Assembly: GCA_907165135.1 (NCBI GenBank)
Contig: OU015566.1
Coordinates: 3,348,001 to 3,412,000 of the forward strand
Source: Oikopleura dioica
Lineage: Eukaryota; Animalia; Chordata
Length of the DNA stretch: 64,000 nt
Direction: 5' to 3'
Positions 1 to 57,628 of this stretch are shown here, in pieces. The notes beneath the pieces are model-generated. The model had not been told where the DNA came from. It made no database searches and saw only the letters and a program-made list of their open reading frames with translations. Position 1 is the first letter of the stretch, and each line of letters starts with the position of its first letter. Made by a program: the position numbers and the translations under genes.

Positions 1-17
1 TCATCTTCACTTCACCC

Positions 18-2765
18 ATGGGTAAAGAGTCACTTTGGGCAGCGAACCCGCGCAACGAGCCCAGCTTCACTCTCGAGCAAATTGCTGAAGAAATAGCTGA
101 AGCAGAAAATGACTCCCCCGAAGATTGGAGCCTAGAGTCGAAGCCATTTCCCTTCAAACCGCTGCTCAGCCCAACAAAACTCCTGAAAAAAGATGCCTCA
201 GGCATGAGCGTAGAACCAAGCGTCAACATTACCGACTCAGAGACATTGGAGGAACTCCTGAAAGCCCTGAACATAGAGAAAGGCCCGTTAAGAATCTTGG
301 CCCGACGAGGAGACACACCAGCTTCAAAAGCCGCCCCAAAGCCTGACGAGAAGGGCAAACTCTATCCCACCAATGTGATGGAAGAATTTTCAAAATGGAA
401 CAAGCTGGCGAGCCAAGACTGGTTCCAAGCATGGGAAGACTCGGAAAATCAGAATGTCCTCAACAAGGGTTTTTGGCACCATGTCTGTCTCCGAGTAATC
501 ATGGAGGACAAAATCAAGGCTCAAGCAAATTACGAAAGACCTGAATTCCCGGATGAACACTGGCTCCAGAGACTCTTAAAAAAGGGACTGGAAGAAATCT
601 TCAACGGACTCAGTTGCACAGAAGCAGACGCAAACCCGGCGGAATTCTTTGACTCACTCAAACAAATGGAAGCGATCAACAGCGACTGGCGCGAGATCTG
701 CCACCAGGAGAACGCCTGGTTGACTCTCAAGAAATACGGTGAAACGAAATGGGCAAGAAAGGAACCAGCAAATAAAAACAGCTGGATTCTGGATGTTATT
801 GGTGAATTCAGACTCGAAGACTCCGAACAACCGGTTCAGACTCCATTATCAAAAATCCTCACGCCACTAGTACTTCACCTAGCTCACCGACAGATCTCAG
901 AAGACTCAGTCATAAGCCAAGACGGAAGCTGCGAGATTATGCTGACTCAGTGGCACATAGAATGGCTCGAGCTCAAAAACAAGAAATCGCTGAAAAAATG
1001 GATTGAAGCAGCAGCAAGAAAGGTTGTCCCCATCAACACAACCGCCAGAATCAAAGAAATTGGGGAAGGGGATTCACATTGGATAATGTGGATTCCATAC
1101 AAGGTGATTCCGCAACTGTGGGTCTTCAATATTGGGAAAGATCAAATCCACCGAAGGGAGAAATCATTGCTCTCACTAGCAGCTCACCCAGGACTCGCTC
1201 CGGAAGAATCAGAAGCGCTAAAGACTCTATCAGCCCAACCATGGACCGAAGAGAACGTCCGGAAATGCATCAGACAATTCCAAAAGCCCACCAGAAATTT
1301 CTACGCGTCAGGAAAAGCCTGCATTGTGGGAGTCAACCGCCCCTTCTCGACTCAAAAGGACATTCTCGAAATCATCGGGAAAATAGTCAGAGACACAAAA
1401 GCTTGCCCTCAGTCCCGCTCAATAGAGCACAACCTCGGAGTCCTGACAGCTGGATGGAACTGGACAAGTGGCAAAAGATTCAGCCCAAACTCGATTTTAA
1501 GATGCTTCATAGACAAATGGACTCAAAAGAGAGAAGAGATTTCCAAAGTGCCAAGACTCCAATTCCAGCGCGAAAAACTGGAAAAACGGAAAAGATCCTG
1601 CGAATGGCCGTTCTGCGGCGAAGCCGATGGAGATTCAGCCTGGTGCAGCAAACACCAGGAAGCACAGGAGATCAGAGAACTCAGACAGCCTCAATGCACG
1701 GAAAGCTGCATGTCCAGAAATGGGATGTTCCAAAAAGGACTCTCAGGAAAGCGTCTCGAGATCGGAATCTCCAGCGACGAGTGGCAACAAATCTATGTCA
1801 GACTCTCAGAAGCCTTCAAAACCCCTAACCTAGCAGACCTTGACGCTGAGCTCATCCAAACCATCCAGAACACCACTGTTCACGGTTTTGACTCAGTAAT
1901 AGAAGCATGGACATCGACAACGATCCTCTTCCAAGGGCAGAACGACTCTACAGCAAGCTTCAGAAAGCTCGAGGACTCCGAGAAATGGATAGCGAAAAGG
2001 CCACGTCAGGAGAAGCCAGAAGCGGCGGGAATCGTCATTTACCACGCTGGCCTTGCAAGATGCGGCAAAAAGTTTGACGCTTTCGTGGTAGGAAACAAAA
2101 CGGCCGGAAAGAATCGGCACTTGGAGAATCTAGCGAAGGAAATCTCCAAGAAATCAGGAGATAAATGGCTCGAAGTAGCAGAGCTGATCAGCGAGCACAC
2201 AAGATTCAAACACACGACTCTGCTCCTACCTTCATACGAAGACGCAAAAGAACTCCGACGGGCCTTGGTCGCCTGGGCAGCACCGTATGTTCGATTCGTT
2301 ACTCAGACTCTGGAAAAGGGCTTCTTATCGAACCTCAAAGGAGACCGAAATCAACGATATTCAGGATTCTGGGAAATCTTCTCAATGGCTTGCGATGGAG
2401 ACTATGAATCTAGAATCACACCTTGTTGGGGCCACCCAAGAGTGGCAGAATTCATGGCCAGAAGCTGCAACAACCTTGGGACAGCGAAAGAAGGAATCCA
2501 GAAAGTGGAAGGACTCAGAATCAGAGCCAACAGAACAACTTGGGAAGACGCGGAGTCAAAAAGACACAAACTAATGCCAAATACCCCTTTCTCGACTCAC
2601 CTCCGGGACATCTTGCTGGACGGAATCAGAGCCGGAGAAAACCTCGACATGGAAGGGAACGAACGAGCCGGAGCAGAAAATTTCTTCCCCAACGTCTGGA
2701 CTCAAACACAACAGACTCTCGAAGATCGGATGGCACGACTAGAGCTCCTTAAAGCCGACAACTAG
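18..2765 (+). CDS. 915-aa protein of unknown function within the element, with a putative C-x4-C-x9-C-x2-H zinc knuckle (CEWPFC...WCSKH); N-terminus may extend past the window edge
   Basis: Long uninterrupted ORF with the same composition and GACTC bias as the element core. The frame is open upstream of the ATG. No family recognised. Confidence 0.75.
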   Translation: MGKESLWAANPRNEPSFTLEQIAEEIAEAENDSPEDWSLESKPFPFKPLLSPTKLLKKDASGMSVEPSVNITDSETLEELLKALNIEKGPLRILARRGDTPASKAAPKPDEKGKLYPTNVMEEFSKWNKLASQDWFQAWEDSENQNVLNKGFWHHVCLRVIMEDKIKAQANYERPEFPDEHWLQRLLKKGLEEIFNGLSCTEADANPAEFFDSLKQMEAINSDWREICHQENAWLTLKKYGETKWARKEPANKNSWILDVIGEFRLEDSEQPVQTPLSKILTPLVLHLAHRQISEDSVISQDGSCEIMLTQWHIEWLELKNKKSLKKWIEAAARKVVPINTTARIKEIGEGDSHWIMWIPYKVIPQLWVFNIGKDQIHRREKSLLSLAAHPGLAPEESEALKTLSAQPWTEENVRKCIRQFQKPTRNFYASGKACIVGVNRPFSTQKDILEIIGKIVRDTKACPQSRSIEHNLGVLTAGWNWTSGKRFSPNSILRCFIDKWTQKREEISKVPRLQFQREKLEKRKRSCEWPFCGEADGDSAWCSKHQEAQEIRELRQPQCTESCMSRNGMFQKGLSGKRLEIGISSDEWQQIYVRLSEAFKTPNLADLDAELIQTIQNTTVHGFDSVIEAWTSTTILFQGQNDSTASFRKLEDSEKWIAKRPRQEKPEAAGIVIYHAGLARCGKKFDAFVVGNKTAGKNRHLENLAKEISKKSGDKWLEVAELISEHTRFKHTTLLLPSYEDAKELRRALVAWAAPYVRFVTQTLEKGFLSNLKGDRNQRYSGFWEIFSMACDGDYESRITPCWGHPRVAEFMARSCNNLGTAKEGIQKVEGLRIRANRTTWEDAESKRHKLMPNTPFSTHLRDILLDGIRAGENLDMEGNERAGAENFFPNVWTQTQQTLEDRMARLELLKADN

Positions 2766-3140
2766 ATTCAAATTCAGGAACGGACTCAAAGATAAAATAC
2801 TTTTAGCGTCAAAATAAATGAAAAATTGAGTCAAAATTAGCCACCCCAGCCAAAACACTAGAATCAAGGAACAGGTTTACATGAATCTACCGATTAAGGC
2901 AGCTGAGCGAGCCAAATTAAAAAAAAAGAGAAAAATCTTATTGTAAACCTTCAAAAACAGCCAAAAACCCTTCCTCCTCTTCTTCTGACTCCCTACTGCC
3001 ATCTTCTGGAGTCCACAAAACGCACAAAAAGAATCCATTCCAGGCCAGGTCCAAGATATTTAAGCATAAAGAGTCAAAATAGCATTTTAAAACAAGATCC
3101 GGGACCGTGGGAAAGTCTTTCCGCGACCCGAGAATCGGGG

Positions 3141-3170
3141 GCGCTGATTGGCTGGCGCGCGCGCCAATGG
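3141..3170 (+). promoter_or_regulatory. Candidate internal promoter: opposed CCAAT boxes around a GC-rich core
   Basis: gcgctgattggctggcgcgcgcgccaatgg lies in the gap between the 915-aa ORF and the next gene, about 250 bp before a TTTTTTTCAG acceptor and the ATG at 3412. Confidence 0.4.
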
Positions 3171-3411
3171 ACAAAGGACGGGATCAAAAGCCAAATTCTC
3201 AGAAATTTTTCCATTTTCAAAGAATCAAGGATTAAAATCCCAAGAAAAAGAGAATCTCAGACGCAAAAGAAGCCAAACCAAAAAGAAAAATTTAGCTTTC
3301 ATTTCTGACTCGAAAATTGTTTCTAGATTCCCTTCCATCCCAAATTCTCCTGGCGCCAAAAATTTTTCAAATCCCCAGACTCTAAAACGAAACTTTTTTT
3401 CAGACTCAGAA

Positions 3412-5916
3412 ATGCCAAGAGACGCAGAAAAAGTCCAGATGCCCAGCGGGGATGAACTAGAGAGACTCCGAAACGAAGCTGGAATCGTCCAAGACCCCAT
3501 CGGCGACGAAAACTTCTGGAGACAGAGAAAGTCGGCAATCAGATCCGACCCGGTGACGCAGAGACCGAACGAAAAGAAGGGCCGAATGCTCAACCGGATG
3601 AGACGCAGAATCGCAGACAGATTCACTGATCTGCTGGAACAGATTCTCGAAGGAAAGGGTCCTCTTAATTTCCCAAGAATATTTAAAATAAAAGAAAAAG
3701 CTTTGATTAAAAACTTCTTAAAGAAAAAGAAGGAAAAGAAATGACCCAAATTAAAGGATTCTCCGATCCAAACAGGCAGATGAGTCTCGACGGCTGGCAA
3801 CATGCGATCAACGGCGCTTCGAACGTTCTCTCGGATCTTATCCGAGAAGAAAACGGAAAGTTCAACGAAGACGACCAGAATCAGTCAGACGAGAGTCTTT
3901 TCTACGGATGCCTCAACACCGCCAAGACCACCATGGACATCCCACCGCTCCTCAACGTCGTCTACGTCGACAAAGACCGCCAGATTCCAGAAGGAAGACT
4001 CCCCGCCTACCAAGAGAGAGTCTCAGCTATCAAGGAATGGGTTCAAAAAAATTCTAGAACTAAAAAACAAGAAACTTAGTACGCCTAATAAAAGGAAAGA
4101 AAAAGAACCCGAAATAAAGTCCAGAGCGGATTTCCTGTTCAGGAAAGATAGACTCCCAAAAAGAGGCGAAGACTCCCTCGAGTCCTGGAAGGAGAAGCGA
4201 AGAGACGAGTACATCAAAGACGGAGTTCCAGAGGACATCGCCAGAGTCCTGACCCGTCGAGACTCAGGAGTCATCGGTTGGACGTCGAGACGAGATGGAA
4301 CCTGCCAGACCGACAGTGTGGACGCTCAGCAGGCCAAGACTCAGCAGACTCAGACCAACTCAGGGACTGGTTTTGAAAACCCGAAACAGAAATATAAGAC
4401 TCAAATCAGTCAAAACTTGACTTCATAAATTCGGAAATCAAACCATTCAAAGACTCAAAAGACTCCGAGACTCAAACCGAGATGTCCAGCACCTCGATGG
4501 CGACCCAAACATCAGCGCCTGCGACGGAAACTGGAACAATTAGCGACACAGACTCAGAAGATTCTTTCAACGCACGCTCAGATCCAAACCAGTTCTTCCC
4601 TCCAGGCTACCAACGAAATGTGGCGCTGACGGATCAAGACTCCGGCTCCGACTCCGACGACCAAGCGATCAGAGAGTCCGACGACGAGGGAGACAACCAG
4701 GACTGGAACCGACGCACCGATACCCTCTTCGCTTCAGCAGAAGAAGAGGCAGAGGCAAAAGAAAGAAGCGCGAGAATCGCCAAAGAAATGGAAGAACGCC
4801 AGGACCAGCCACTGTCGGACATCATCGAGGAGTCTGAAAGCCGATCGCTGGAAAGAATGGCTCAGAAAGAAGAGGCTGAAGCTCAGCGACGAACTCAGAA
4901 GGCGCGCATCGACAGACTCAAGCAAGAAGCAGAGGCAGAAGCCCAGAGAGCAGCGGACAAAGCCAGAGCCAAAGAAGCCTTGAAGATCCAGATGAAGAGA
5001 CAACTGGACGAGAACACCAGAATCCGCCGGGAATACGCCGAGCAAATCCAGCGCGAAAAAGAGGCGAAAGAAGCTCAAGAAAGACGCATGGCTCGAGACA
5101 AGGAGGCAGAAGAAAAACGACTCGCTGCGATCAAGGCTGCAGAAGAAAAAGTCCTCACAGAGCCGAGAATTGGAATCAGACTCGTCGCGGAGACCGGAGC
5201 CAAAGGCAACTACTACTACCTCTCGAAGAAGGAATCCAAGCTGATGGAAAGATCCGCAGGAAAGGGCCCTTAGACTCAAAACAGTAGACTTCAAATCTAA
5301 AAACTCTAAGAATCTAAATCCCAAACCAAAAGAAAAAAGTCTTTTCTCACAAAACTAACATATCAGGGCCCCTTTAAAAGTTCGAGACATGCTCGACAAC
5401 CGAAGCATCAGCAACTTCAACGAGGTCAAGCAAGCCTGGTTCAGCAGCACCGGACTCCAGAAGTTCAAAGACTCTCGACTCCCCGGCCACCGCCACTACA
5501 AATACAACAACAGAAGCAGCTGGGAAATCAAGGAGGGAACCACGGAATGGAGACTCGACCCAATCGACTACCTCACCAAAGAAGAAAGAGCTGTCATCCA
5601 TTATGTGGTGGAGTTTTTAAACTATGAAGGAATCAAACGAAGATTCAAAGAAGCCATAGGTAAGACACACAAAATATAGAAAAAAAAAAAAAGTAATAAC
5701 CAGCAAAATAAGAGTCATAAAAACTTATGCAAATCTTTAGACTCTGGACTCCTCAAGCCAAAGAAGCTGGACGTCATCCTTCTCTTCGCGTACAAAATCT
5801 GTGGAAGTAACCTGGTCCACTACATGCGCTTCATCTTCGTCCGACTCTACAAGCTCCACGAGATTCCCATCCCTCCAGTGCACTCCGACGCTGCACCAAG
5901 ACCACCCAGATACTAG
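3412..5916 (+). CDS. Spliced accessory protein of the element (acidic linker, long coiled coil, helical C-terminal domain); function unknown
   Basis: Frame-restoring GT-AG introns at 3659-3756, 4041-4119, 4370-4452 and 5660-5740 join ORFs 3148/3741/3802/4482 and 5389 to a final exon ending TAG at 5916. The junction at about 5260-5380 is unresolved (possibly a non-canonical donor), so this could be two genes. Confidence 0.6.
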
Positions 5917-6179
5917 AAGACTCAAGAATACAAACTGCCATGAAAAAAAAAACCTCATTGATAAAAAACTGTTAAACTGACTCTTACTTCCCACTGAAAA
6001 AAAAGACTCTTTCACATTTTTAAATCAAAATTGACAGAAGCTGTGCTTAATAAATTAACCCGATCTCACTAGAAGATCCTAGACTCTTTCTTGACTCCAA
6101 AATGAAGAGCATATTCAGAACCGAAAAAGAATAAATAATAAATACAAAGAAGCTTAAACTTTTTCGCTTTTCAGACGCA

Positions 6180-7648
6180 ATGGAATCGCAATATCTAACA
6201 CAAAAAGAAGCGCCTAATGCGCTAGAAATGCCATCGGATTCAGGGAGCGGCTACAAGAATCAATATTAAAATAAAAAGAAACTTAAAAAAGAGGCCAAAA
6301 AAGCCCTAAGCAGGCCTAAAAATCCTAAGCCAGTATAAAAGAGGATTCGAATGCGGAAGCACCCTCAGACGAACCATCCCAAGACTCATCCCCAGCAGCA
6401 GATGCAGGTGCAGCCGCGGGCGAAAACCCAGCGCAGATAGAACACTCAAGCGTCGACTTAGAGATGCTCAAAGGACTCGTCTGGGACATACAAAATAGTC
6501 TCAACACGAACGCAGCAGTCCCACCAAAAAGAATCCCATGCTACGGTTCGACTCTCGCCGAGAAATTGACGAACCTCGCAGCTGAAGCAACCAAGATCAT
6601 TGCAGAGTCACAGGAAGTGTCCAATAGCATCAGAAAGATTCTACAAGAAGCTGACAACGAGGGCCTCCAAGGGGCTCAAATGCTGGAAACCTTCCGCACT
6701 ATTGCCATACTGGCCCACAGCCCTTCGATTGGGATCAACCGCCGTCTAGCCTCAACCAACAAAGTCGACATAGAAAACATCCAAGACACGCTCGAACACA
6801 CAGTCAGACCCCTCGTCTCGGACCTTATGCGACAGGTTTATGAGAAAAGCGTCTATAACTCGGACGAAATCGCATTTTGGGCAAGAATGATGGAGCCATT
6901 AGAAAGAGACTCGATCTCCAAACCGGATCTCCTCAAATTGGAAGAGGGTGTGGCATGGATTCTCCTAAGACTCTGGGGAGAGCCGGCGGAGGCCATCTTC
7001 AGAATGATTCTAGCGCAATGTAAGCCCCCAGAAGAATCGAACTCTCGGATATCGCCAAGACTCACAATGGTGGCCCACATTTGGAACTGCAGATTCAAGA
7101 AGATGCTCGGACGCCCGCCGGCGGAAAGACGAGCTTCTTTTGCAAACGAGAGGCAACTGTGTGCAACAATAGCGAATGCGATCTTCGGAGAAATCCATTT
7201 CCAATTGACCAACACCAGATGCATCTTCCCAAGACTCCTCTCGAGTGCAGCCAGATCGGCCTGGACTCATTTGAACACAATCTTCGGGCCCGCGAACCCA
7301 CTTAGCCTAACGCTCAGAAATTTTCTAACGAACATTGACGCGAATCAAGATTACACTGCGTGGGACGCGATTGGCACGCTGCGCAAACTATGGCCGCATA
7401 GAGACGCAATTCCAGAGGCACAATACAAGACGCTGAACCTCAACGACATCGATAATCGGCTAGAAAAAGGACTCGAAGATCCGTCCTCACTCTACGGCAC
7501 CACGTACGAGAAGCTCTTCTGGAAAATTCCGATCCCAAGAAGCTATGAGTCTACCTACCCAGTCGCAGGACCCAAAAGAAAGAGACAAAAAACAGAAGAC
7601 GAAGAGCTGGAAGGAAATAGAGGCGGAAATGAAGATTCTCGCCAATAA
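6180..7648 (+). CDS. ORF1/gag-like protein overlapping the pol ORF
   Basis: 394-aa ORF whose frame is open back to 6329. ATG 6180 follows a TTTTCAG acceptor and can be joined by a tentative GC-AG intron at 6250-6329. Its 3' end overlaps the RT ORF by about 100 nt in another frame, as DIRS gag/pol do. The gag identity is positional only. Confidence 0.6.
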
Positions 7649-10061
7649 AGGAGTCTTCAACAGACAAAAAATCCCAATTATCTACCCTGTCACCATAAGC
7701 AACACAATCACAAATGGCCCAAAAACTTTACCAGAATGGAAAATCTACGAAACAGAACTGCTGCATAGAGTCATCAGAGTCTTAAACAACGAGGAAAAGC
7801 CAGATTGGGACAAATTAGCGCTGAAGAAAGAATCAGATTTCGTCTCAGGACTCTGGACACACAACAAAGACAACTGGAGGACACTTATCCATCAAATGCC
7901 AGAGAAAATACGGCCACTAATTTATCACTTTGTCCACGCGGGTGCCGACCTATTCCTGAACCTCAAACGGATCCCCCCGAAGAAACCGGAAAGATTCAAA
8001 CACAAAGAGCTGGTGACAATATGGAAGAGAAACGAAGCCAACACGGAAACTCTGAAAAAACTGGGTGGAAATTTTAAAACCTGGTACAATGATAGACTCA
8101 GACTCTCAAAATTCGTGCCACGCCCTTATGAGAAAATCGGTAAACGATTCAAGACTCTGTCCGTCCCGAGCCAAGAAGCAGTGAAAGAAAGGAACGAAGA
8201 AATCATCAACCAAATAACCGAGTGGTGCGACATGGGATCAATCTCAAGACTCACAGACTCGAAAAAATGCTGGATTCAGGCAGGATTTGTCCTCGTCGAC
8301 AAGCCAGGAAGGGAAACCAGAGTCTGCTGGAATGGTGGAGTCCTCAAGCCGCTCCAACTCTACACCTTTCCCTGCAAATTAGAAGGAGTCGGAGCAGCGA
8401 TTCAGATGCTAAAAAAGGGAGACCTACTCTTCAAATTCGACGATAAGAAGGGTAAGGAAACTCGGCCAAAAAATCTGTCAAATAACACCGAAGCCCTAAC
8501 CACATCTTAAGGTTTCCACCAGCTTCCGCTCAGCGAGGAAAGCAGGAAAATGGCATGCTTCGAATGGGGAGGCCAAGTCTTCAGAAACAACATCCTCGCC
8601 TTCGGAATCCCGGCAGCACCAGGAATCTATCAGCTCATGAATCTCTGCGGAGTCAACTTCCTAAGGAAAAATGGAGTCAGGATAACACTCTATCTAGATG
8701 ACAGACTCTTGGCAATCACACCAGACTCTGATAAAGAACGAAAAGAGCTCCTCACAGGCGAGAAAATAAGCAAAGAAGTCTGGGCTACAGTTGCGACTCT
8801 AGTGGCCCTTGGCGGATACGTCAACATAGCCAAGAGCACATTTACACCCACCCAGAGAATCGAATTCTTGGGTTTCATTCTGGACACAACCGAAGAAACT
8901 GTTGAAATACCGTTGCAAAGATGGGAAGCCCTCAAAACCCTTATGAAAGACGCAGAGGCCAAGAAAACGATCCAGACAAAAACGCTAGAAAGAATCAGAG
9001 GCACAATGGCGAGCATGGCAGAAGTACTGACAAACATGAGGATGCTTATTCGACAAACAACGATTCTCATCAGCCAGGCATTGAGAGAAGAAAAAGAAAC
9101 CTGCGCCCTATCAGAAGAGGTCAAAGAAGAATGGAGACTCTGGAGCCTGCTAGAAGAGAAAGGGCTCAAAAGACACTGGACAAATTTAAATCGCCAAGAG
9201 ACAGGCCTAATAATTTACACAGACGCATCCTCTCACGCGGGGGCCATCGTTATTGAGCAATGGAACTTAGAAGAAAGATTCGCTTGGGAACCAGATCTGG
9301 CAGACAAGCACATCGGGATCAAAGAGGCAGCGGCGATCCAATTCACTCTGGAATGGTACGGGCAGAAGCTGAAAGACAAAAGAATCCTATTTTTGTGCGA
9401 CAATGATAGTGTAGTCCAAGGTGTAATAGCCGGAAGCAAAGATCCGGAAATGAATAAGATTCTAGTCAGAATCTGGACTCTAGCGCAGCGCTCAAACATC
9501 GATATGAAAGTCGATTGGGTTAGCACCAAAAAACAACTTGCAGATGGCCCCTCAAGGAATTTAGACTCGCGAGAACAAAAACTAACGGCTGACGGATTCG
9601 CATATCTTCAATCTCACCTCTCGGACTCCTTGGACGTCGACGTGGCAGCAACGGTAAATTGCCTAAAGACTCGAACCAAATTATTTAACAAAATTCAGCC
9701 ACTGAACGCGAAATGCAGAGACTTCATCACGCGCAGAGAGACAAGAGGAGCTTTTGGAAAAGATTTCCTTAATTTCCCGATTCATGAGCTCATAGGAAGA
9801 AAGCTGTATGCATTCCCGCCTCCCAAAACAGCCCACAGATTCTATAACAGACTCGTAGAAATAGCCACGCCCTGGGCATTAGTTGTCCCCTGTTTCGAAT
9901 CAGAACCACTGGTAATCACAGAAGCCAGAATCAAGGGATACAGAATCTTCGACATCCCGGCTGACTCAATCCTCACCCCAGCAAAAGTTAAAACAGCCGA
10001 CGGCTACTGGAAAGTGGCATCTAACATCTCAACCATAAAAGTCGCCACAAACAGACTCTGA
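7545..10061 (+). CDS. DIRS-type pol: reverse transcriptase, RNase H and Dam-like N6-adenine methyltransferase domain, with 2 introns
   Basis: Removing 8452-8511 (GTAAGG...TTAAG) gives FKFDDKKG|FHQLPL, followed by LAFG..AAPGIY and LYLDD. RNase H motifs YTDAS, IKEAAAI, CDNDSV and LADGPSR are present. Removing 9654-9698 gives DVDVAAT|PLNAKC...GKDF...LYAFPPP...LVVP, the DIRS MT signature. Confidence 0.92.
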
Positions 10062-10244
10062 TATACCGATTCTGCCCCCTTTTCACACTCGACTCAAAAG
10101 GCCAGCAAGAATAGCCACTTCTGGCTCGTAGATTCTCCTAAAAAAAAAAACACCACTTACCCAACCTCACCACTATACCAAACTAGAAACAAAAGCCTTG
10201 GCGGTAACTCCTTCCTTTTTTCAGACTCGAAATCCTTGGAAAAA

Positions 10245-11577
10245 ATGTCGGATCAGACCAAGACTCTCTCCAAGCTGCTGGCGGACCACACCAAGCTCAC
10301 AGAGCAAGAGGCGAAGACACGAGCGGCAAGAGTCCAAATTTCAAAGGCCCAATTCTTCGAAATCGCTCAATCCAAGACGAGAACGGAAGAGGCGGACAGA
10401 CTTTTCATGGAAATCGAAGACATCAAGAAGGACATGTTGACTCACGACAAGTTCACCGACTCCCTCATCGTAAGTAGATGACTAGAATAAAATTCAAAAC
10501 CCTCACCGCTTTTTCATAGGCGGAAATCGCGGAACTAGAGGCCAACCGCGACAAGAGTCTTGCGATCAAGGAAAACGAGCCAAACGCCAAAAAACGGTCA
10601 GAAGAAGATAACAAATTCTACGACCGTTGGAATCCAGCGGAGTTGGAGTCGAAAATCCGCCGGCTGATTGCGGACAAGATGGAGCGATACAGCCTCAAGG
10701 GATCCATGTTCGCCCAGATCAAGGCTCGAGAGTCAAAAATCGCCGAACTATCTTCAGGCGGCTCGGAAACTTCGGCGGTCTTCAAAGAAGTCGACCCGCT
10801 CACAGGAGAAGAGTCTTATTTCATGGTAAGTCCAGAAATTCAAAGGAAAATAACAAATGCACGCATACCAATAAACAGAAATCTATACAATTCCACTCAA
10901 AACACGCTTCAGACTCAAATAGGCACAAGCAACCTGCCTCAGGACGACGGCGACTCTCTTCGGGAAATGGGCAAGGAATTCCGAGCTTTCGTCTCAGACG
11001 CGAAAAACCAGCGCACCTTCAAAAAGGACAAGCTCATGCGACTCCTGGGCAACTACAAAAGAGCCATGTCCCCAGAATACCCGGAGCGAGCAATCATCGA
11101 AAGCATCTTGGACGAACTGATCAGGATGCCCGATATGACTCGAAAAGACGCGCTGCTCTCACTCACGGTAAGACTCGTAAAATAGCAACCCTGCTTTTAA
11201 AGCGTCGCATTCAGCCGCTCATGCGCCCGAACGTCCGACACAGCTTCGATCGCGCACTCACGATGAACACCAACCACCATGTCTTCAAGAAAATGATCGG
11301 CAACCCCTGTGACGGCTCTGAAGACTGGCGGTCGGAAAAAGACTCGAAACCGGGTCGAGGACGCCGAGGTGGACACAATAACGGCGGTCAATCAAAAGCA
11401 AAAACTGACCACCAAGGTGACGGCCAAAAGGCCAAGGACGGAGACAACGAGACTCATTCCGGAGGCCGCGGGCGAGGCCGAGGCCGAGGCCGAGGTCGCG
11501 GAAGAGGCCGAGGCCGAGGAGGAGGAAATGCTGGTGGCGACACCAAGAAATTCCAAGATCAGGGTGGAGTCGAATAA
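10245..11577 (+). CDS. Spliced coiled-coil protein with an RG/RGG-rich C-terminal tail (second gag-like or nucleic-acid chaperone gene)
   Basis: ATG 10245 follows a TTTTTTCAG acceptor. Introns 10470-10519 and 11168-11202 (plus a tentative in-frame 10826-10912) link ORFs 10236, 10643 and 10627. It ends in GGRGRGRGRGRGRGRGRGGG...GGVE*. Confidence 0.7.
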
Positions 11578-11738
11578 AAATCACCACTGAAAGAAGCGCA
11601 ACAAGCCAGAAATCTCAAACTAGCCGACTATAGACTCTCAGCTTTTTAGGACTCTTAAAAAAAAAACTGCTTCAAATGCTTAAAATTCTCAGATAGCTCT
11701 TCAAAGGAAAGGTCTCAAATTTTCAATTCTTAAGAACC

Positions 11739-12930
11739 ATGACCTGGCTCGACTACAAGAATCTCCTGGAACACTGGGAAGTAGCAGAAGCAATGGCCAC
11801 GTTCAGTTACGACGAAGCCGAAATCGACGACGTGATTCAACACTTCCTCGACAGACTCCTCACAAGACCGACTCTCAAGGCCTACGCCTACGAGAAAGGG
11901 ATCGTAACGATCCAGGACGTCATCGTTTCTCGACTCAAAAAACCGCTCACCCCGAAGCAAAAACGGAAAATAAAGACCTGGTGCGAGCACAGAGCGCGGG
12001 AGTCAGCAACCCAGACTCTGCAATACCCAAAGGTATAAAAAAAAAAAGGGAGACCCAGCCCGAAAAATAATACTCCTTCAAGCAAGCGGAGGTCGTCGAC
12101 GAGCCCGAGGCAATCCGACTCTGGGAAGAGCTCCTGAAGACAAATAAGCCCAAGCCAAGAGAAGCGGCCATCGCTTTCTTCATCTGCTTTACGACGGGAG
12201 CAAGAATGAAAGAAGCGCTCAATCTCAGAGTCGAAGATCGAGAAGTCGTTACCGAAGACGGAAACGAATTTTGGCGATTCCATATTCGATGCAGCAAAAC
12301 CGATCCGTTCTGCAAGCGAATGGAAACCCTCACCATCGTTATGGACATGCGGCATGGAGTCCCACTCGGCCTAGAACTTAGAGCCCAACTCAGGGATCGA
12401 GATTCAGGTACTTATAGCACTTATTACTCAAGACTCAACAAGAAACTTTTTTAGGCCTTGTTCTCAAGACGCTCGAAGGCCATACTCGCATCGCATCTGA
12501 CTACCTGGCGCGCTACGGAGCCAAGGCAAAACTGTCAAAAAAGGTAACCAATCAAGGAAGAAAACAAAACTCAGATTAATAAACGTCGTAGGTCTCGGCG
12601 CACACGGGAAGAGTCAGTTTCTACATCGAGGGACGCCGAACAGGCTTATCACAACAGACTCTAGCACACACACTCCGTTGGGCACCGGGAAGCTCCATGC
12701 CAGACTACTACGAAAGGTGCTGGCTTGAATGTAGCAACTCAGGAGCGCCGGTCAGCGTGGCAAAATCTAGAGCCAGAAAACGAAACGACAGCACTAGCAG
12801 CGACCAAGACCAACCAAAGGTACTAACATTTAAAAATCCAAGAATCAATTATGAAAGGCCTTAGAGTCAAGAACGACCAGAAGCAAGTCAAAAGCCAAAG
12901 AAGCCGAAAAACACTGCTGAAGAAGCATAA
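11739..12930 (+). CDS. Tyrosine recombinase (DIRS-type integrase) with 3-4 introns
   Basis: Introns 12033-12082, 12408-12454 and 12544-12591 restore one frame containing TGARMKEALNLRVED (Arg I), RCSKTDP (Lys), SAHTGR (HxxR), LRW and MPDYY (Tyr). A possible fourth intron at 12820-12864 would extend the stop to 12930; otherwise the stop is at 12864. Confidence 0.9.
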
Positions 12931-13022
12931 AAAGAAAAAGATGCCTTTTTCCACTTTTAAACAGACTCGAATAAAAAAAGACTCATTTTTACGATTGATG
13001 AGAATAACAAGAATGGTAGGGA

Positions 13023-13067
13023 GGGAATATTCCCATTACCATTGTTATTTATGCGTGATTATAATAC
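13023..13067 (+). repeat. Split direct repeat copy B1 (45 bp)
   Basis: gggaatattcccattaccattgttatttatgcgtgattataatac, identical to 13466-13510. Confidence 0.9.
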
Positions 13068-13465
13068 GAATCTAGGACAAGGGATTAGCAGGCCGCTAAA
13101 AATAGAACGCGGCAGCGGAGCCTAGTCAACGGCAGCAGAGACTCCCAGGAAACGGCGGAAGGTGTCACAGGCGCGCGAGAGCATCTAGATTCAAGCGGGT
13201 GCCCCGAAATCACGCAGGTTCATTCCAAAAGGTTATAGCTTGAGGCTAAAACCTTAAATTGGGAAACTTATATTAGAGACTTTTTCTCAGCAGGAGCATT
13301 ACCAATAAGACTCCTACCTGATTCAAAAAGACTCACCCACCCACCATCCCTGAAATAAGCAGTACAAGTAGGGTAAATCGAGCACACGCCCTACATACTG
13401 CCCAGTCCTAACCTTAGAATCTCAGCGGAGCTTCTCTTACCACAGTATTGTAATTGCGCGTGCTC

Positions 13466-13510
13466 GGGAATATTCCCATTACCATTGTTATTTATGCGTG
13501 ATTATAATAC
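13466..13510 (+). repeat. Split direct repeat copy B2, marking the 3' terminus of the element
   Basis: Identical 45-bp copy of 13023-13067. Element-like composition ends here. Confidence 0.88.
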
Positions 13511-14902: not shown

Positions 14903-15286
14903 ACCGTGGTTTTCCATCTTAAGAGCGCCCAACTTAAGAGCGTTTTTTCCAATATTTTTAATATTTTGTCATCTGAAAAAATCCCAACTTTAGAGCGTTT
15001 TTGGGAATAATTAGTATAACGTTTGAAAATCATTGAAAAAAATTTTTTTCTACGCTTTTTTTCAGGTGAAATAGCCTCTGATTCAAAGATCGTAATTTTT
15101 TTATCATAAATAGGTAAAAATGACATGAGATGCATTTTAAGAGTTTTGGAAAAAATTCATATTATGCATTTTCATTCATTATTTTTTCCCACTGTCATCC
15201 TAGTTTGGTCGTAAATTTTCCAACTTAAGAGCGTTTTGGTCTACCCTTGTCATCTGAAAAACGCTCTGAAGATGGAAAACGACGGT
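14903..15286. mobile_element. MITE with about 25-bp terminal inverted repeats
   Basis: accgtggttttccatcttaagagcg ... cgctctgaagatggaaaacgacggt. Internal repeats of caacttaagagcgtttt. Confidence 0.6.
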
Positions 15287-46373: not shown

Positions 46374-49362
46374 ATGAGAATAAGAGAGTTTTTCCTCATT
46401 CTCGGCGTAAGAGGGGAATATAAAGACTACGGCTCAGATTTTGAGGTTTTTTATGATTATGAATATGAAACGAGCGAGATGAGTGAGAGATTTTATTTGC
46501 CAGAAGAGTCGGAGGAGAGAGAATATGAATACGAGAATGAAGAATTCGAGGAAGAAATTAATAAAACTGGAGAATCTTTTTTCAGGAAGAGATTGAAATT
46601 AAAGAGGAAAATTTCTAGTAAAATTGAGAATATCTTTATTCAAAATGAAAAAGGCGGAAAATCAGATTTTCAAAATATTTTTCGAACTTCAATTTTTAAT
46701 CGTTTTTGAAGCTCTTTCTTTCAAACAAACAACTCTCCTCTCACAACTCTTCCTCCAACAACCGAAGAACCAATTCAACTCTGCGAATTCAAACATTTTG
46801 CCGAAAAATCCATCGTTGCTTTCCACGCTCGATCTTATGATATCTTTGACCGAGAAAGGGCGAAAGAAATTTTTCGGGGAATCATGACTAGAATGTCGGA
46901 TATCGCGCATGGAATAGATGGCGATTGCGAGGAAAAAATGTTCAATTGCGATTTTTTGAAAATTGATAGAGAAGAGGTTAGTCTCTTAATTTATCAGACC
47001 GCTCAAAATATTTTCAGCATGCATGCACCCTTGTCCGAAGAATCGAAAATCTCGCTGGTTCAATCTCCTCCCTCTGCCCTCGCGTCCAGTTTCCAGATTT
47101 CGAAGAGCTCCAACAAGCCGTGCAGCCAAAGCACATGTCTTGTCCCTTCCCAACCATGCTACGAGAAAACATCAACTCAATGAACAAAAAATTCAAACAA
47201 GAGTACGAGCGATCTCCCCTCAAAGCCCTTTCCCTAGCGCTGGAAGAATACAAAATCAAGCTTCAAAATCTCGTCGAAAAAAGCGCCGAAATTGAAATGG
47301 AAGAATACCCGGAAATGCAAAGCGATGCTTTTGGAGAAATTTTGGAAGAGGAAGAAGAAATCGAAGACGAAATTGACTTTCTCGAAAAAATAATTCGGGA
47401 GAGAAAAAAACGGAAAGAAAAAGCAAAAAATTTTGCAAAAACTCAATTTGAGAAAAAATCCTCTTGGAGGACGAGTTGGCAAGGTCGACTTTCTCCATTC
47501 AATGGGTTCTCTTCGTCGACTTCTGTCAGACAAATGGGAGCAGTGAGCGAGAAAATGAAGCCAAAAAAGTTTGGTGGCGCGTTTTCTGTTTTTCCGAGTC
47601 ATGGGAGTAATAAACCATTCAAGGCGGAGGTCAGAACTTTGGAGCTCGGAATGAAGGTCAAGGATCCGGAAGAGCCAGGAAAGCCAATTGATCCTTGGGA
47701 TGGGGAAGGAACAACGACCCAGGAGCCATTTACGACCACGACGATTTTTGATAGGACGCAGAATCCAGATCCGACTCCTTCTTCTACGACTTCAACGACG
47801 AAATCTACAACGAAATCGACAACAACAAGCACATCAGCATCATCATCAACGAAACCATCAACCACAACAACCACGACAAAATCGACAACCACGACGACAA
47901 CAAAACCTAGCACAACAACAATTACCACGACGACAACAACCACAAAAACATACAAGGGCGATGAACCTACTGGCAAATGCCCGCCTTTAGAAAATCCGTA
48001 CTGGTGGAGTTGTCAGAGAGACGGTATAATTTGCTATTTGAGCACATGTGGCGGTAGTAAGCCAAGAAAAGCAGTCTGCAGAAGAGGGAGCTGGAAAGGA
48101 AATTCGTCCACAACAGGTTGCACGATCCCTGATCATCAAACAACAACAACAAAGGCGACAACTACTACAATGACTTCTTCTCAAATAACAACGACGACAT
48201 CAACCACTACTACATCAACACCGAACACTCCCTGGACAGGTTAAACTGACAATTCTGAAAAAAATAACGATTTTTTTACATCTCTTTTCAGGTCCGCCAA
48301 CGTCAACAACTACCATCAAAACCACAACAACAAAAGCAACAACAACAACAACAACAACAACAGCTGTCACTTACAAAGGCGACGAACCAAATCCGAAATG
48401 CCCCGAATTGCAAAATCCAACATGGTGGACTTGCTCCAATAATGGCAATACCTGTATTCTGTTCACATGTGGAAAGAGGAAGAGGCAAGCTCATTGCAGA
48501 GTGAAGAATGGGAAGTTCTTCTGGAAAGGAATATCCAATACAGACGGGTGTACTATTCCTGGTTATGCTACAACAACAACAGCAAAATCAACAACCACGA
48601 CTACAACCACATCTACAACAACCACAACAACTCCCTGGACTGGTCCGCCGACAACACCAACGACAACAACAACCACGACGGCAAAAACAACAACAACAAC
48701 CACGACATCAACAATCACCTACAAAGGCGACAAACCAAATCCAAAATGCCCTACTTTGCCAAATGCTACTTGGTGGAATTGCGAAAACAACGGAAACACA
48801 TGCTACTTGTTCACATGCGGGAGAAGAAAGAGAAAGGCAATGTGCAGGGTGAAAAAAGGAAATTTCTTTTGGGCTGGTAGTCCAAGCACAAATGGCTGTG
48901 ATAAGCCTGGTTATGTTCAAGAATCAACGGATCAATCTGTCGCTTCCTCTACTACTGCAGTTACTCTTCCTGCAACCACAAATTCTCCTCAAAATCCCAC
49001 ATCTCCGACATCTTCGACATCGTCGTCAGTTTCAGCGAACCCGACATCGACGACCACTACGATTGCAAGTTCTTATATCGGCGATGCTCCCTACTTCAAA
49101 TGCCCTATTCTCCCAAACCCAACCTGGTGGAACTGTTCAAATGATGGAAAAACTTGCATCATTGCAACTTGCGGCAGGAGACAACGGAAAGCCTACTGCA
49201 GATATAAAAAAGTAAGGCAAAATAACAAGACCTCAAATTCATATTCTTCAGAAACAATGGGTTTGGACCGGCAGTCCGGGAACAAATGGTTGTAAACAGC
49301 CGAGTTACGTTACATCAACGACTCAAAGTCCTACTGTACCAGCTACTACAACCGGCCTCTGA
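46374..49362 (+). CDS. Large secreted mucin-like protein: acidic N-terminus, helical region, Thr-rich linkers and four repeats of a 6-Cys/Trp module
   Basis: Hydrophobic start MRIREFFLILGVRG. Introns at about 46977-47017, about 48240-48291 and 49212-49251 join the ORFs. The module YKGD-P--KCP-L-NP-WW-C---G--C----CG-----A-C...W-G---T-GC--P occurs four times. TGA at 49362. Confidence 0.8.
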
Positions 49363-51819: not shown

Positions 51820-53103
51820 ATGATGCTGACCAGTGCTCTCCTTGGCATGGCCCTCGCCGATCCAATTCTGTAAGTTCTGTAAGTCATTTCATCGTCACTT
51901 TCTCATTCATTAAGCATTCCTTTGAAAAAGACCCCCATGACCCGAGGAATCGGAAATCTCCACTCCAAGTACCGAGCCGACGTCCCCACCAACGAATTGA
52001 CCAACTACTTCGACGCCCAGTACTTTGGCCCTTTGACAATTGGAACTCCCCCTCAAAACTTCACGGTCATCTTCGACACTGGCTCCTCCAACCTCTGGGT
52101 TCCTTCCTCCAAGTGCGATCCTCACATCGGCACTGGTTTCGCTTGTTTGAACCACAACAAGTACAACAGCGATGACTCCAGCACCTGGACCGAGGATGGA
52201 ACCAAGTTCGAGATCCAATACGGAACCGGCTCCATGGTCGGCTTCCAGTCCATCGATGACGTCGACATTGCTCCTGGCTCTGGTGGCCTTGTCGCCAAGC
52301 AGGCTACCTTTGCCGAAGCTGTTGAGGAGCCTGGCGTCACCTTCCTCGCTGCCAGGTTTGATGGAATCATGGGTCTTGCCTACCCTTCCATCTCCGTCAA
52401 CGGCGCTACTCCCATCTACAACCAACTGATGGAAGACGGCCAGGTCAACGGCGTCTTCGCCTTCTACATCCATCGGGATAGCTCCAAGCCCGGCCAGTCC
52501 GACATCGGCGGCGAAATCGCTTGGGGAGGCGTCAATCCAGAACGATTCGAAGGAACCTACCCAGAATCGTTCACCTGGCACGATGTGAGCCGACAAGCTT
52601 ACTGGCAAGTCAACATGGGAACCGTCACTGTCAACGGGGATGGTTTCGTTTCCGACCAGCCTCTCGTCGAGTGCCAGGGTGGCTGCCAAGGAATCGTCGA
52701 TTCTGGCACCTCTTTGATCACAGGCCCAACCGAAATCACCGACCAAATCAACAAGGCTATCGGAGCGATCGAATTCATTGCTGGAGAATGGCTCGTTGTT
52801 TGCCGAAACAAACCAAGAATGCCGACAATCGACATTTACATTGATGATGTTCGATACCGAATGACTCCTGGTAAGATTTAAAAAGGGAATTTTAGCTAAT
52901 AAATGTCGCATTTAGACGACTACGTTTTGACGATTGAGGATCAGGGACAAACCCAGTGCATTTCCGCCTTCATGGGTCTTGACATTCCCCCACCAGCTGG
53001 TCCTCTCTGGATTCTCGGAGACGCCTTTATGGGCATGAAATACACTGTCTTCGACTTTGACACCAACCGAGTCGGTTTTGCTCCACTCAAGGGTGAACAA
53101 TAA
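51820..53103 (+). CDS. CTSD: Cathepsin D-like aspartic protease
   Basis: Signal peptide [13 protein letters not shown]. Catalytic [11 protein letters not shown] and DSGTSLI, flap YGTG, C-terminal WILGDAFM...[11 protein letters not shown]. Introns 51870-51914 and 52871-52915. Confidence 0.93.
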
Positions 53104-53964: not shown

Positions 53965-56599
53965 ATGAAGCTTTTGCTCCCTTTTCTGACGCTAGCAAAA
54001 GCTAATTCAGGTATTTCAATTAAAAAAATCAAGTCAATAAGATATTGCTTTGATAAATTCAAACCAATCAAATTAAATCTTTTACCTGACCAAATTATAA
54101 GCCCAAAAATTGTCCATGAAAAACAAAAATCAAATTTTAGGATCAAATTTTATCGATTCCAAAAAAGGCTACGTAAACATCACAGCACCAGGAACTGCAG
54201 GTCTTCAATCTCGTCGACCAAATGCCATTTTCGGTATGAGTCAAGGCGGCCGAGATGTTTTCGCAGCTCAAGATGTCGATCGAAATTTCGCCGAACCAGG
54301 TCTAAGCGTGGCTGATCTTGATTTGGACAACAGAATGCCGTCGCCGCTACGATGCAGAAATCCGCTAGTTCGAGGAGTTGTGGATTCTAGAATCGTTGGA
54401 GGATACGATGCACAAAGAGAAGCTTGGCCGTTTATTGTGAAGATAAGGATCGGTTGTGGAGGGACGATTGTCAGTCCTCAGTGGATTGTTACTGCTGCTC
54501 ATTGGTAAGCTATTTTTTGAAGGATCTCCTATCTATCTTTCAGCTGCCGAGTCTCAAACTTGCGATTTTTGGACGTGACGGTTTCTGAATACGATCGCGC
54601 TGGAATCGATAAAGACGCACAAACCATCCAAGTCGACAAAGTCGTCATCCATCCCAAATTCGTCCCTGCCACGCTTTTGAACGACATCTGCTTGCTCAAG
54701 CTCAAATCGCCAATTGAATTCAACAGTAAGATTTGTTTTAAAAGAGGGATTGTTCACGTGTTTCTTCAAGTGCACGCGCAGCCAGTTTGCCTGCCAGAAA
54801 AGAACTCTCGAATAGATAAAGTGAAACTGGGTGAAGGGCCACTTTGCTATGTCGCCGGTTGGGGACGGGTTGGAGAAACAGAAGGAACCGCGCGAATTCT
54901 TCAAGAGACCCAGGTTTGGAGGAGATTTATTTTGAGAGAAGAAGCGTTCACTAGTAGTATAAAAATTGGTTTGAAGGCAGTAAGGTTGATGTTCTCACAT
55001 TTAAATCAAATTGTTATATTGAAAAAAATTCTAAGTACCCAAAAATCGCAGCTCAATTATGGTTTTTTTTTATGTTTGATCTTAGAAATTTTTATTGCAA
55101 TCTCTCCCGAAAAATCCATTTTGATTCAATCAAGAATTTTTGAGTCGACACTTGAGTAAAAATTTATTATGAGGAAAAATTCTCTATTTTTTTAAATATC
55201 TTTTTAGGTGCCAATTATTCCAAATAAAGTCTGCGACGCGGCATATGCCCGAAACAAGGTACACGAAAACGAGATGATGTGCGCTGGCTATGCAGAAGGC
55301 GGCATCGATGCTTGCCAAGGCGACTCCGGCGGGCCAATGATCTGCGTCGAAAACGATCAGCCAGTTCTCCGCGGCGTCGTTTCTTGGGGAATCGGCTGCG
55401 CAAGAGTCGGCCTCTATGGCGTTTACACTAGAACTTCCTCGTACATCGACTGGATCAAAAGCACCGTCAATCCAAACGACCAAACCTTCGGCGATCTCAT
55501 CAGCAATCCTCCCACAACACAAGCTCCATCTACTCCTCCCAAGACAACAATTCCTTCTGGCACAAGTCCGATCCATCCTCGATGCGGTGATCCAACGAAA
55601 AAGGGTTTCAAGATCGCCAACAACGTCCTGGTCTCTTGCCACAGCAGCCAATGCGATTTCAAATGTCCGGATGGAATGCGACCGTCTCTTGCAAAAGCTG
55701 TTTGTAATTTCAAGAAACGACAATTTGCTCCGAAAAAATTCAAGGTAAATCCAAACCTAGGCCCCTTTTTTCACCATTTTTTCAAGAAAACGATTCATTG
55801 TATCAGCGACAAACCATCAGAACCGCCAGTTCAAAGCTCTTCAGGGGGCTTCAACTCGAATCCTTCTGCTGACGTTGCTGCTGAACTCAATACAGGTCAG
55901 GTCCAAAGTCAAGGACACCCTTAATCTGAGCTTTAGGAAATGCAATGACAAAATGTGGAAACATCGTCAAAAAATTCCGACTTGATACATCCGCCCTTTC
56001 TGTCGACTGCGAAAATGACATCTGCAAATTAACAGTAAGAAAACAACCCTTTTTCTTTGACTTAGAAATTCGCTAAGTGTATCGATGACAACATGCGACC
56101 AACTCTGAACAAAATCACCTGCAATGTAAAAGGAAAGAAAAAGAAAACTGCCCCGAAAAAAGCAAAAGTGAAGTGCGTCGTGAAGGAAGGATCCAGAGGT
56201 AAGATAAATAACTTGGCTTGTTAATTACTCAGCTTTTTGGAAAATGCTCAACCAGCTGCGAAATCAATGTTTTTATTCATCCTTTTTAGCGATGCGCCAC
56301 GTTGGTTCAGAAGCAGAGGAAACATGTGGATATATGCCAGTGAGAACCTCAGATCCGGTGGATTATTTTTGCGAGGGAATGCAGTGCAATTTCTTTTGCC
56401 CTACCGACGATCTCAAGGTTAGTCAAAAAAATAAAATTTCAATATTTTTTGAACGAATAAAAAAACTTTTTTTATTTCAATTTTTATTTTTTTATTGAAA
56501 AAATTAATAATTTCTATTCAGCCAACTCGTGAAAAAATCACTTGCAATCCAAGAAAGGGAAAATGGTGGCCAAAACGATTCAACGTCTTCTGCCAATAA
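53965..56599 (+). CDS. Secreted trypsin-family (S1) serine protease with three C-terminal 6-Cys modules
   Basis: Signal [13 protein letters not shown], activation site R|[26 protein letters not shown] and VSWGIGC. C-terminal exons repeat CG...C...C-F-C...P...C modules. TAA at 56599. Confidence 0.9.
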
Positions 56600-57628
56600 G
56601 AAATCGCCTCTCTTACTTTTATCCAATCAGAGTCCTCAATTTCGACTTCTCATCTATTGATCTACTTTTGTAGAATTTTTTTGTAAAAAAACTTGTTCAA
56701 AACTGCGAAATTTTTTTCACACAAAATCACCTCCAAAATTTCCTTCTTTTCTCTTTTGATCGCCCCTTATTTTTGTCTCACATGATCAAAGACAGAAAAC
56801 GAAGCGAAATTTAGTTGGTCGAAATCGTTATTTTCGTCCCTGTTCGCTGAAAAAAGTCCAAGACTCTAAGTGCGTGAAAGTGCTTATTTCAGCGAAAAGG
56901 ACATTTTCCGCTGCTGGATATGAAAAGATAGTAATCTGAAATTCTACTGCTGGATATAATGAAATACTGTCGTTCTGTCTTCTTACTGTAAATAAATGCT
57001 GTTATCAAAAAAATCACAGAAAAGCTGGTTTTTTTCTTTGAAAGTTGAAAATAAGTGCTGATTTTGGAGAAATAAAAATCCGAGTCGGAATTTCTTGAGA
57101 TGATGCGACAAGCGTAAAAATTCGCGGATAGGTTCAGACGTGTAACGGTTTTGGAGGCGAGACAAGTTTTGCTCTTCAAGAAAATCGGCTTTCTAGCATT
57201 TTCTTTTGTCTAAATTGACGAAGACAGAAATCTGCACGCCAGTTGGTTTTTGAGAAAAATCACCTTGAAGATACTATTTTCCAAAAGAGTAGACGACCTT
57301 TAATGCTCATGGCTGGCGTGTTCCAGCTAAAATCGGATGAGCCAAATGTCGACATGCTTTTTAATCGACTTTTCACTTTCAACTTCCGGAGAATTCCTCG
57401 AAATACTGTAGGAAAATTCCGACGATCCTAGCATAGGATGGAAATCCGCCTTCTCTTTTATTGCGGTTAAAAAACTAACACCAGACTGTCGAATTCTCTC
57501 GATTTATGAATAGCACCTTATGTGTTGCTTCCACCTTGACAAAAGCGGTGTCTTCCGGATCAACAAGTCGATTGTTGAAAAAGTGAATATAAAGGTGAAA
57601 AATTCCTAAGGATTTGTTCAAGAAAACA

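Follow-up and report, generated by a model that had tools for sequence, protein, structure and literature searches.

The first 13,510 nucleotides of a 64,000-nt stretch of the Oikopleura dioica genome (contig OU015566.1, positions 3,348,001 to 3,412,000, hereafter the window) raise the question of whether six or more neighbouring genes, some of them without any recognizable retroelement domain, can form a single retrotransposon, as had been proposed from the nucleotide sequence alone, or whether an ordinary element happens to lie beside unrelated genes. For retrotransposons in general, a ceiling of about 10 kb is assumed, set by transcript length, reverse transcriptase (RT) processivity and packaging (PMC6431247), and published DIRS-like elements are about 4-6 kb long with three open reading frames (ORFs) (PMC9210276, PMC6681497), the Xenopus entries ranging from 4146 to 6224 bp (PMC9210276). 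The analyses presented here indicate, with a probability of roughly 0.85, that the element at this locus is full-length, probably still active, and belongs to a 14-15-kb family of autonomous tyrosine-recombinase (DIRS-order) retrotransposons of O. dioica, which has split direct repeat (SDR) termini and a pol gene for RT, RNase H and a Dam-like methyltransferase (MT) domain.

The extent of the element was established by comparison with a second copy. Contig OU015566.1 corresponds to chr1 of the Okinawan assembly OKI2018_I69 (GCA_907165135.1), and window position 1 is position 3538 (100% identity) of the locus of the window element, here labelled L001; L002 denotes the second copy and L003-L011 related elements and contigs. 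L002 lies on OU015568.1 (17.1 Mb; PAR according to the protein name) and encodes an identical 394-aa protein. The two loci are 99.5% identical over exactly a 14.5-kb span and have unrelated flanks; the alignment places the element at L001 2541-17047, equivalent to window -996 to 13510, or 14,507 bp. The original prediction was more than 13.5 kb and at least twice the usual size; the element is about three times as long as usual. The second copy measures 14,604 bp and differs by 69 substitutions (0.48%) and 22 indels. Homology between the copies ends precisely at the ends of the terminal repeats, on the right at position 13510, the very coordinate predicted for a split-direct-repeat terminus. 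The shared composition claimed for the co-oriented genes is also evident: the coding strand is A-rich, with an AT skew of +0.27 to +0.45 from position 1 to about 13000 and close to 0 beyond 13500, and the co-oriented ORFs, belonging to six to seven genes, are there as described (Table 1). Rfam and tRNA scans of the element gave no match to RNA genes.

The termini are arranged as split direct repeats, A1 ... B1-A2-B2, a layout that characterizes PAT, Ngaro and VIPER elements and is tied to reverse transcription (PMC6681497). The copy of 13068-13465 expected at the left end is present at L001 2541-2807, although only 267 nt of it (13068-13334) are repeated. The internal boundary between B1 and A2 reads like the right end of the element joined to its left end (...ATAC/GAAT...), and the ends are conserved across relatives (5' GAATMTAGG, 3' ...GCGTGATTA..ATAC). 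A1 and A2 are 98-100% identical inside each of L001, L003, L005, L009, L010 and L011, and the A sequence of L002 is unchanged from that of L001. No duplicated bases that would indicate a target-site duplication were found in the flanks of seven elements; inverted terminal repeats are absent between the element ends, and both-strand self-comparison of L009-L011 returned direct terminal repeats only. The SDR model, as published, takes identity within the A and B repeats as the sign of a recent insertion, so that the identity of A1 and A2 also fits recent transposition (PMC6681497).

Searches with the products of pol and of the ORF in gag position retrieved six further related elements, four of them Okinawan (L003, L009, L010, L011) and two Norwegian (L004, L005), and a tblastn comparison with every product of the window element revealed a gene order common to all eight. 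Five of the six are full-length, 13.9-15.2 kb long and have the same repeat layout, and with L002 they make up the dispersed full-length copies; only a handful of copies was found in all. ORF1 and gene 2, which occupy the part (1-6100) that could have been missing from other copies if these were host genes, are carried by L002 and by all six relatives. Likewise, wherever the left A copy was found (seven elements) it stands upstream of ORF1 and never upstream of the gag-position ORF, that is, not just before position 6180, where the left end of a shorter element would have been expected. Identity of ORF1 to the window copy is 61% in L003, 41.5% in L009, 40% in L010, 60.6% in L011, 26% in L005 and 27% in L004; at the same six loci it ranges from 75% down to 42% for the gag-position ORF and from about 82% down to 41% for the main pol segments, pol being the best-conserved gene across elements. 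The accessory genes diverge in step with the core, but faster, which fits long co-inheritance and not to separate capture.

The coding sequences bear the mark of selection. Over ORF1, the gag-position ORF, pol and the tyrosine recombinase (YR) gene, L001 and L002 are separated by 16 synonymous changes at 1658 sites and 11 nonsynonymous changes at 5881 sites (binomial p = 3e-5), so that the ratio of nonsynonymous to synonymous divergence (dN/dS) is about 0.19. Of these changes, ORF1 contributes 10 synonymous and 7 nonsynonymous ones (p = 9.5e-4), and the gag-position ORF 4 and 0. Between L003 and L011, the 990 codons of ORF1 that were compared give dN 0.013, dS 0.085 and dN/dS 0.147. With dN/dS between 0.15 and 0.19 and a divergence that parallels that of pol and YR, ORF1 behaves as a part of the element, as had been claimed for the accessory genes. 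Low ratios of this kind imply that most of the divergence accrued under selection, as expected for lineages that still transpose. The four frame-breaking indels between L001 and L002 (3709, 5327, 8468 and 12037) all fall inside predicted introns; the remaining indels are mostly intergenic or in untranslated regions, the exceptions being three 1-nt homopolymer differences and one 92-nt insertion.

The enzymatic core is that of a DIRS-order element, and catalytic motifs were seen in each domain, in line with the original remark that all of them look intact. The RT has the motif YLDD and a partial match to RVT_1, and the annotated product P0002 carries PF00078; a distant relative, the pol of L006 (32% identical), passes the RVT_1 cut-off. 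The D-E-D-D residues of RNase H are present in the alignment. The MT-like domain that follows RNase H has the pattern D..A..N..R..YAFPP, invariant among the aligned relatives, six of eight of which match Pfam PF05869 Dam (best E 1.4e-6). For YR, the exon model is the unique GT-AG solution that matches the annotated length, and the residues R-K-HxxR-W-Y align with the recombinases of L006 and L007. The L006 recombinase passes the Pfam Phage_integrase cut-off, while giving no match to PDB sequences; annotated YR homologues carry PF00589, and exon 2 of the window YR alone reaches an E of only 0.024. The pol frame is +1 relative to the gag-position ORF, and the two overlap by 104-131 nt in L001, L004 and L005; pol might be expressed through a frameshift, from a start codon of its own or from a separate mRNA. 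A word-based search found relatives of the gag-position ORF in O. dioica only; no capsid, nucleocapsid or other match emerged from Pfam, from the PDB profile search or from hhalign against the ORF upstream of pol in L006, and the label "gag-like" reflects position and overlap with pol only.

Introns are a distinctive feature of these genes. Those of the original prediction are real and more numerous than it stated: the window element has two in pol, four in YR, three in the RG-tailed gene and several in gene 2. The pol and YR introns of the O. dioica elements are of the GT-AG type and 38-66 nt long; five introns of the window element were verified as GT-AG with 45-60 nt, and a sixth, the second of pol, starts with GT and ends with AG. 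The median intron length of the O. dioica genome is 49 nt (PMC8008620). Both pol introns occupy identical positions in L001, L003, L004 and L005, and the first three YR introns have the same positions in six other elements, except that YR exon 3 was not located in L005; at these shared positions length and sequence vary between the O. dioica elements. In the distant relatives L006 and L007 the pol and YR introns are absent, and excision of both pol introns joins residues that are contiguous in the intronless relatives. The first pol intron holds an in-frame stop, so a full-length RT requires splicing. Pyrimidine-AG acceptor-like sites precede three start codons by 1-20 nt, those of gene 2 (L001, L003, L011), of the RG-tailed gene (L001, L003, L011, L009) and of YR (L001, L003, L011, L009, L010, L004). 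O. dioica has operons and spliced-leader (SL) trans-splicing. The sites resemble the SL trans-splice acceptors of downstream operon genes and could serve as such; splicing from a 5' leader, as in retroviruses, would also fit.

None of the accessory genes matched Pfam, and none could be given a function. ORF1, predicted to be 915 aa long, is in fact a 998-aa frame whose 5' end is cut by the window edge. Profile searches of Pfam and PDB gave no match for ORF1, nor did hhalign with the ORFs of L006. Foldseek found nothing with the full-length AlphaFold2 (AF2) model, which is too poor for the purpose (pLDDT 51), or, against PDB and BFVD, with a model of the core (residues 200-560, pLDDT 76; E > 0.05, TM < 0.15). 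A profile search of 1.84 billion representative proteins returned 25 matches; among the ten looked up, all that are named are from O. dioica and the rest are metagenome fragments. On this sequence evidence ORF1 is an orphan protein under purifying selection. The public annotation covers just the last 126-128 of its 984-998 codons (L001 5922-6302; homologues in L002, L003 and L011), and in L009 the public models (1060 and 1363 aa) fuse ORF1 or pol with neighbouring genes.

Gene 2, originally described as a spliced coiled-coil gene, is spliced but may be two genes: the annotation has two in L002 (275 + 410 aa) and in L003. Its coding blocks are kept in other elements in alternating frames, and exhaustive GT-AG enumeration did not yield a unique exon model. 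The RG-tailed gene is conserved in all O. dioica relatives; its exon order was taken from the homologue P0056, frames and first intron being read in the sequence. A word-based search with its product found a sole relative, the L003 homologue, also from O. dioica. Neither the RG protein nor the pieces of gene 2 match Pfam. The RG/RGG tail suggests RNA binding, and the most likely role of ORF1, gene 2 and the RG protein is in the ribonucleoprotein of the element itself; as a guess, the products of ORF1 and gene 2 might hold or protect a very long unspliced RNA. An envelope or fusion protein was considered as a candidate role and rejected, no product having a hydrophobic or membrane-spanning segment (best 19-residue Kyte-Doolittle mean 1.33).

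Table 1. Features of the element and related elements of O. dioica; coordinates refer to the window unless a locus is named.
Feature	Position or location	Strand	Remarks
A1 repeat, 267 nt	L001 2541-2807, upstream of window	+	100% identical to window 13068-13334
ORF1, accessory	1-2765 (L001 3306-6302)	+	998 aa in full; starts 231 nt upstream of window
Gene 2, spliced acidic/coiled-coil accessory	3412-5916	+	Annotated as 676 aa here
Gene 2 as possible pair	2a ~3413-4428; 2b 4482-5916	+	
gag-position ORF, 394 aa	6464-7648	+	Single exon; 104-nt overlap with pol; identical protein at two loci
pol (RT - RNase H - Dam-like methyltransferase)	7545-10061	+	Introns 8452-8511 (60 nt), 9654-9698 (45 nt)
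gag-position/pol ORF overlaps	6464-7648/7545-8510; L004 7866-9221/9103-10023; L005 8509-9903/9773-10531		
RG-tailed accessory gene	10245-11577	+	~382 aa, 4 exons; C-terminus (RG)n/RGG-rich
Tyrosine recombinase (YR), 333 aa	11739-12930	+	5 exons; introns 12033-12082, 12408-12454, 12544-12591, 12820-12864
B1 repeat, 45 nt	13023-13067	+	
A2 repeat, 267 nt	13068-13334	+	100% identical to A1
Unique spacer, 131 nt	13335-13465		Between A2 and B2
B2 repeat, 45 nt	13466-13510	+	Right element end; homology with second copy stops here
Element L003	chr1, Okinawa		14,734 bp; A1/A2 98.2%
Element L009	XSR, Okinawa		14,852 bp; A1/A2 100%
Element L010	chr1, Okinawa		15,001 bp; A1/A2 100%
Element L011	YSR, Okinawa		13,906 bp; A1/A2 99.2%
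Element L005	Norway		15,225 bp; A1/A2 99.2%
Element L004	Norway		Begins inside element (scaffold start); A1 not found, B pair only

A replication cycle can be proposed that accommodates these features. A single long primary transcript would run from A1 to B2, and part of it would be converted to mRNAs by cis-splicing and by use of the acceptor-like sites before the starts of gene 2, RG and YR, either through SL trans-splicing, as in the operons of O. dioica, or through splicing from the 5' leader. The unspliced full-length RNA would be the template for RT and RNase H; the internal B1-A2 copy would then let the cDNA close into a circle with a ...ATAC/GAAT... junction, and the recombinase would insert this circle without target duplication.

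Several points weigh against the conclusion that the element is an intact and active retrotransposon. The window RT remains below the Pfam gathering cut-off (26.2 vs 29.6 bits), and the window's own MT-like domain, taken alone, gives no Pfam Dam match. In the second copy, pol lacks 1 nt of an A-run in its 5' part (7666), and gene 2 has 92 nt inserted in its acidic part (window 4579; L002 ~8022-8113); these may be real defects or errors of the Nanopore assembly, and the insertion may lie behind the annotators' split of gene 2 in that copy. The same holds for all three 1-nt differences between the copies (3394, 4045 and 7666), which lie in T7, A7 and A6 runs, respectively, of likely coding sequence and could be Nanopore errors or true defects of the second copy. 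Poly(A) signals were considered as a sign of separate mRNAs and discarded, since 16 AATAAA motifs compare with 13 expected from composition. Moreover, all statements on the long unspliced RNA, on the pattern of splicing, on trans-splicing and on the circle are deductions from sequence, and the retention of about 14-18 introns through retrotransposition would need a mechanism that bars spliced RNA from copying.

This last point favours an alternative in which the element moves as DNA, the recombinase excising and re-inserting, or copying, the whole segment in the manner of Cryptons or integrative elements, with the RT uninvolved. Copying at the DNA level would explain why the 14-18 introns stay fixed in position though the core proteins of the subfamilies differ by about 30-55%; intron retention would need no special explanation, and the internal B1/A2 junction is a possible recombination site. 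Intron retention has, however, precedents among retroelements in retroviruses, Penelope-like elements and Ogre. The RT, the RNase H and the MT-like domain are all intact and have been conserved, pol being the best-preserved gene, and the presence of copies on several chromosomes suggests copy-and-paste; together with the link of the A1...B1-A2-B2 layout to reverse transcription in PAT, Ngaro and VIPER (PMC6681497), this makes movement as DNA improbable. An origin as a composite, in which an ordinary DIRS element of 7-8 kb (gag-pol-RG-YR) sits beside a segment (1-6100) of host genes or of another element, while the two copies represent a segmental duplication, is less credible still and can be regarded as very unlikely. 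It is true that ORF1 and gene 2 are devoid of retroelement domains and that the assembly annotation handles them as ordinary genes; but the left A repeat precedes ORF1 in seven elements distributed over chr1, PAR, XSR, YSR and a Norwegian scaffold, and never the gag-position ORF, the L001/L002 homology stops exactly at the repeat ends, ORF1 divergence tracks that of pol across elements, and the homologues of ORF1 that were found all come from such elements or from unnamed fragments.

The extra ORFs beside gag and pol, together with a coding strand as A-rich as that of many retroviruses, might also suggest an endogenous retrovirus-like infectious agent, one of the extra genes coding for an envelope or fusion protein; indeed, the Tor elements of Oikopleura have been described with env (PMC5240408). 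This possibility appears equally slight, since hydrophobic segments are lacking in all products, glycoprotein matches are absent from Pfam and BFVD, and the element has a recombinase instead of a DDE integrase and no long terminal repeats. An autonomous tyrosine-recombinase retrotransposon that includes its accessory genes remains the best explanation of the locus.

Among known groups, the element is an SDR-type, methyltransferase-bearing member of the DIRS order, PAT-like by structure (termini and MT). With PAT, kangaroo and TOC it shares the A1...B1-A2-B2 layout, a pol with RT, RNase H and Dam-like MT, the YR, the absence of target-site duplication and the overlap of gag-position and pol ORFs (definitions in PMC3266345 and PMC6681497). 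Conversely, PAT-like elements have about 4-6 kb and three genes, whereas the O. dioica element has 14-15 kb and six or seven genes, among them three or four conserved orphan accessory genes, as well as spliceosomal introns in pol and YR. DIRS1-like elements have an RT/RNase H/MT/YR core of the same type, but are defined by terminal repeats that are inverted and by a complementary region inside the element, in place of which the O. dioica element has SDRs and no inverted repeats. DIRS1-like sequences of O. dioica, listed by Volff 2004 and Piednoel 2011, have been on record since 2004 (four sequences in two families; PMC3266345, also PMC5240408); the literature consulted mentions neither their size nor extra genes or introns. 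The survey in PMC3266345 placed the sequences of O. dioica among the DIRS1-like elements and listed no PAT-like ones, while the elements described here have SDRs of the PAT/Ngaro type; either different elements are concerned, or pol-based class and terminus type disagree.

Ngaro-like elements also combine SDR termini with a YR, and some carry a fourth ORF for an SGNH hydrolase (PMC9210276); they are without the MT domain (PMC3266345), which is present in the O. dioica element, and the latter has no hydrolase match in Pfam. Cryptons, which have a YR and no RT, differ by the lack of the intact RT/RNase H found here. Comparison can also be made with other giant retroelements. Ogre and Penelope-type elements retain introns. 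Terminons, Burro and Ogre resemble the O. dioica element in exceeding the usual limit of about 10 kb and in having extra ORFs without known function, and differ from it in RT clade and integration enzyme (PMC6431247); the same 2019 review of giant eukaryotic transposons makes no mention of DIRS elements. No published description of this architecture was found in the full-text literature, a search that left Repbase, Dfam, Volff 2004 and Naville 2019 outside its scope; that it has already been catalogued is a serious possibility, judged somewhat less probable than the contrary.

Relatives outside O. dioica were found among ENA metagenome sequences, whose pol proteins are 31-37% identical to that of the window. 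The most complete is formed by L006 1-18860 (ERZ27286976 k119_502930) with its leftward extension L008 1-3406 (ERZ17099389 NODE_53849), which encloses co-oriented ORFs only, including an 818-aa intronless pol and an intronless YR. A pair of 49-nt B repeats, together with an A repeat where the contig starts, implies that the element measures about 22.3 kb and shares the A1...B1-A2-B2 layout; the same protein is carried by four contigs, and those examined come from at least two ENA assemblies. L007 1-15462 (ERZ16350102 NODE_430) consists entirely of co-oriented ORFs, pol and YR among them, and has no element ends, so that this element must exceed 15.4 kb. The accessory ORFs of L006 and L007 have no detectable similarity to those of O. 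dioica (by hhalign for L006), and pol profile scans gave no match in IMG/VR and, in JGI metagenomes, short contigs only.

These relatives lead to a broader proposal, which is tentative and stands just short of even odds: O. dioica and some further marine organisms would harbour an undescribed clade of giant (14-22 kb) YR retroelements, polycistronic and with six or more genes that include lineage-specific orphans under selection, whose pol and YR genes in Oikopleura are interrupted by old, conserved spliceosomal introns. The element would depend on host splicing, perhaps on SL trans-splicing, to make its enzymes, and yet be copied from unspliced RNA. If true, the DIRS order would have its first giant members in this clade. 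A family that keeps to 14-15 kb and whose extra genes are under selection, and which has a relative near 22 kb, means that the YR order can grow large and stay so, and the conserved introns in pol and YR raise the question of how a retroelement keeps spliced RNA out of replication. O. dioica, a laboratory animal with a small genome, is a tractable system for such questions; the genome measures 65-70 Mb (PMC8008620). The assembly gene models are inconsistent at these loci, where ORF1, for example, is reduced to 126 aa and nothing marks the genes as parts of a single element.

The rest of the window contains ordinary animal genes with short introns. Among those recognized as host genes are a pepsin-type aspartyl protease (Pfam Asp, E 2e-74) and trypsin-like serine protease exons, which lie at 51922-52881 and 54110-58741. 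A Thr-rich mucin-like gene with repeated Cys-containing modules (47120-49295) has an AT skew as high as that of the element, because of its runs of threonine codons, and shows no similarity to the element by BLASTN. Closer to the right end of the element, 14903-15286 contains a pair of inverted arms of 25 nt (92% complementary) with 334 nt between them, and the left arm is also where a related direct repeat of 48 nt begins; the flank may hold a small non-autonomous transposon here.

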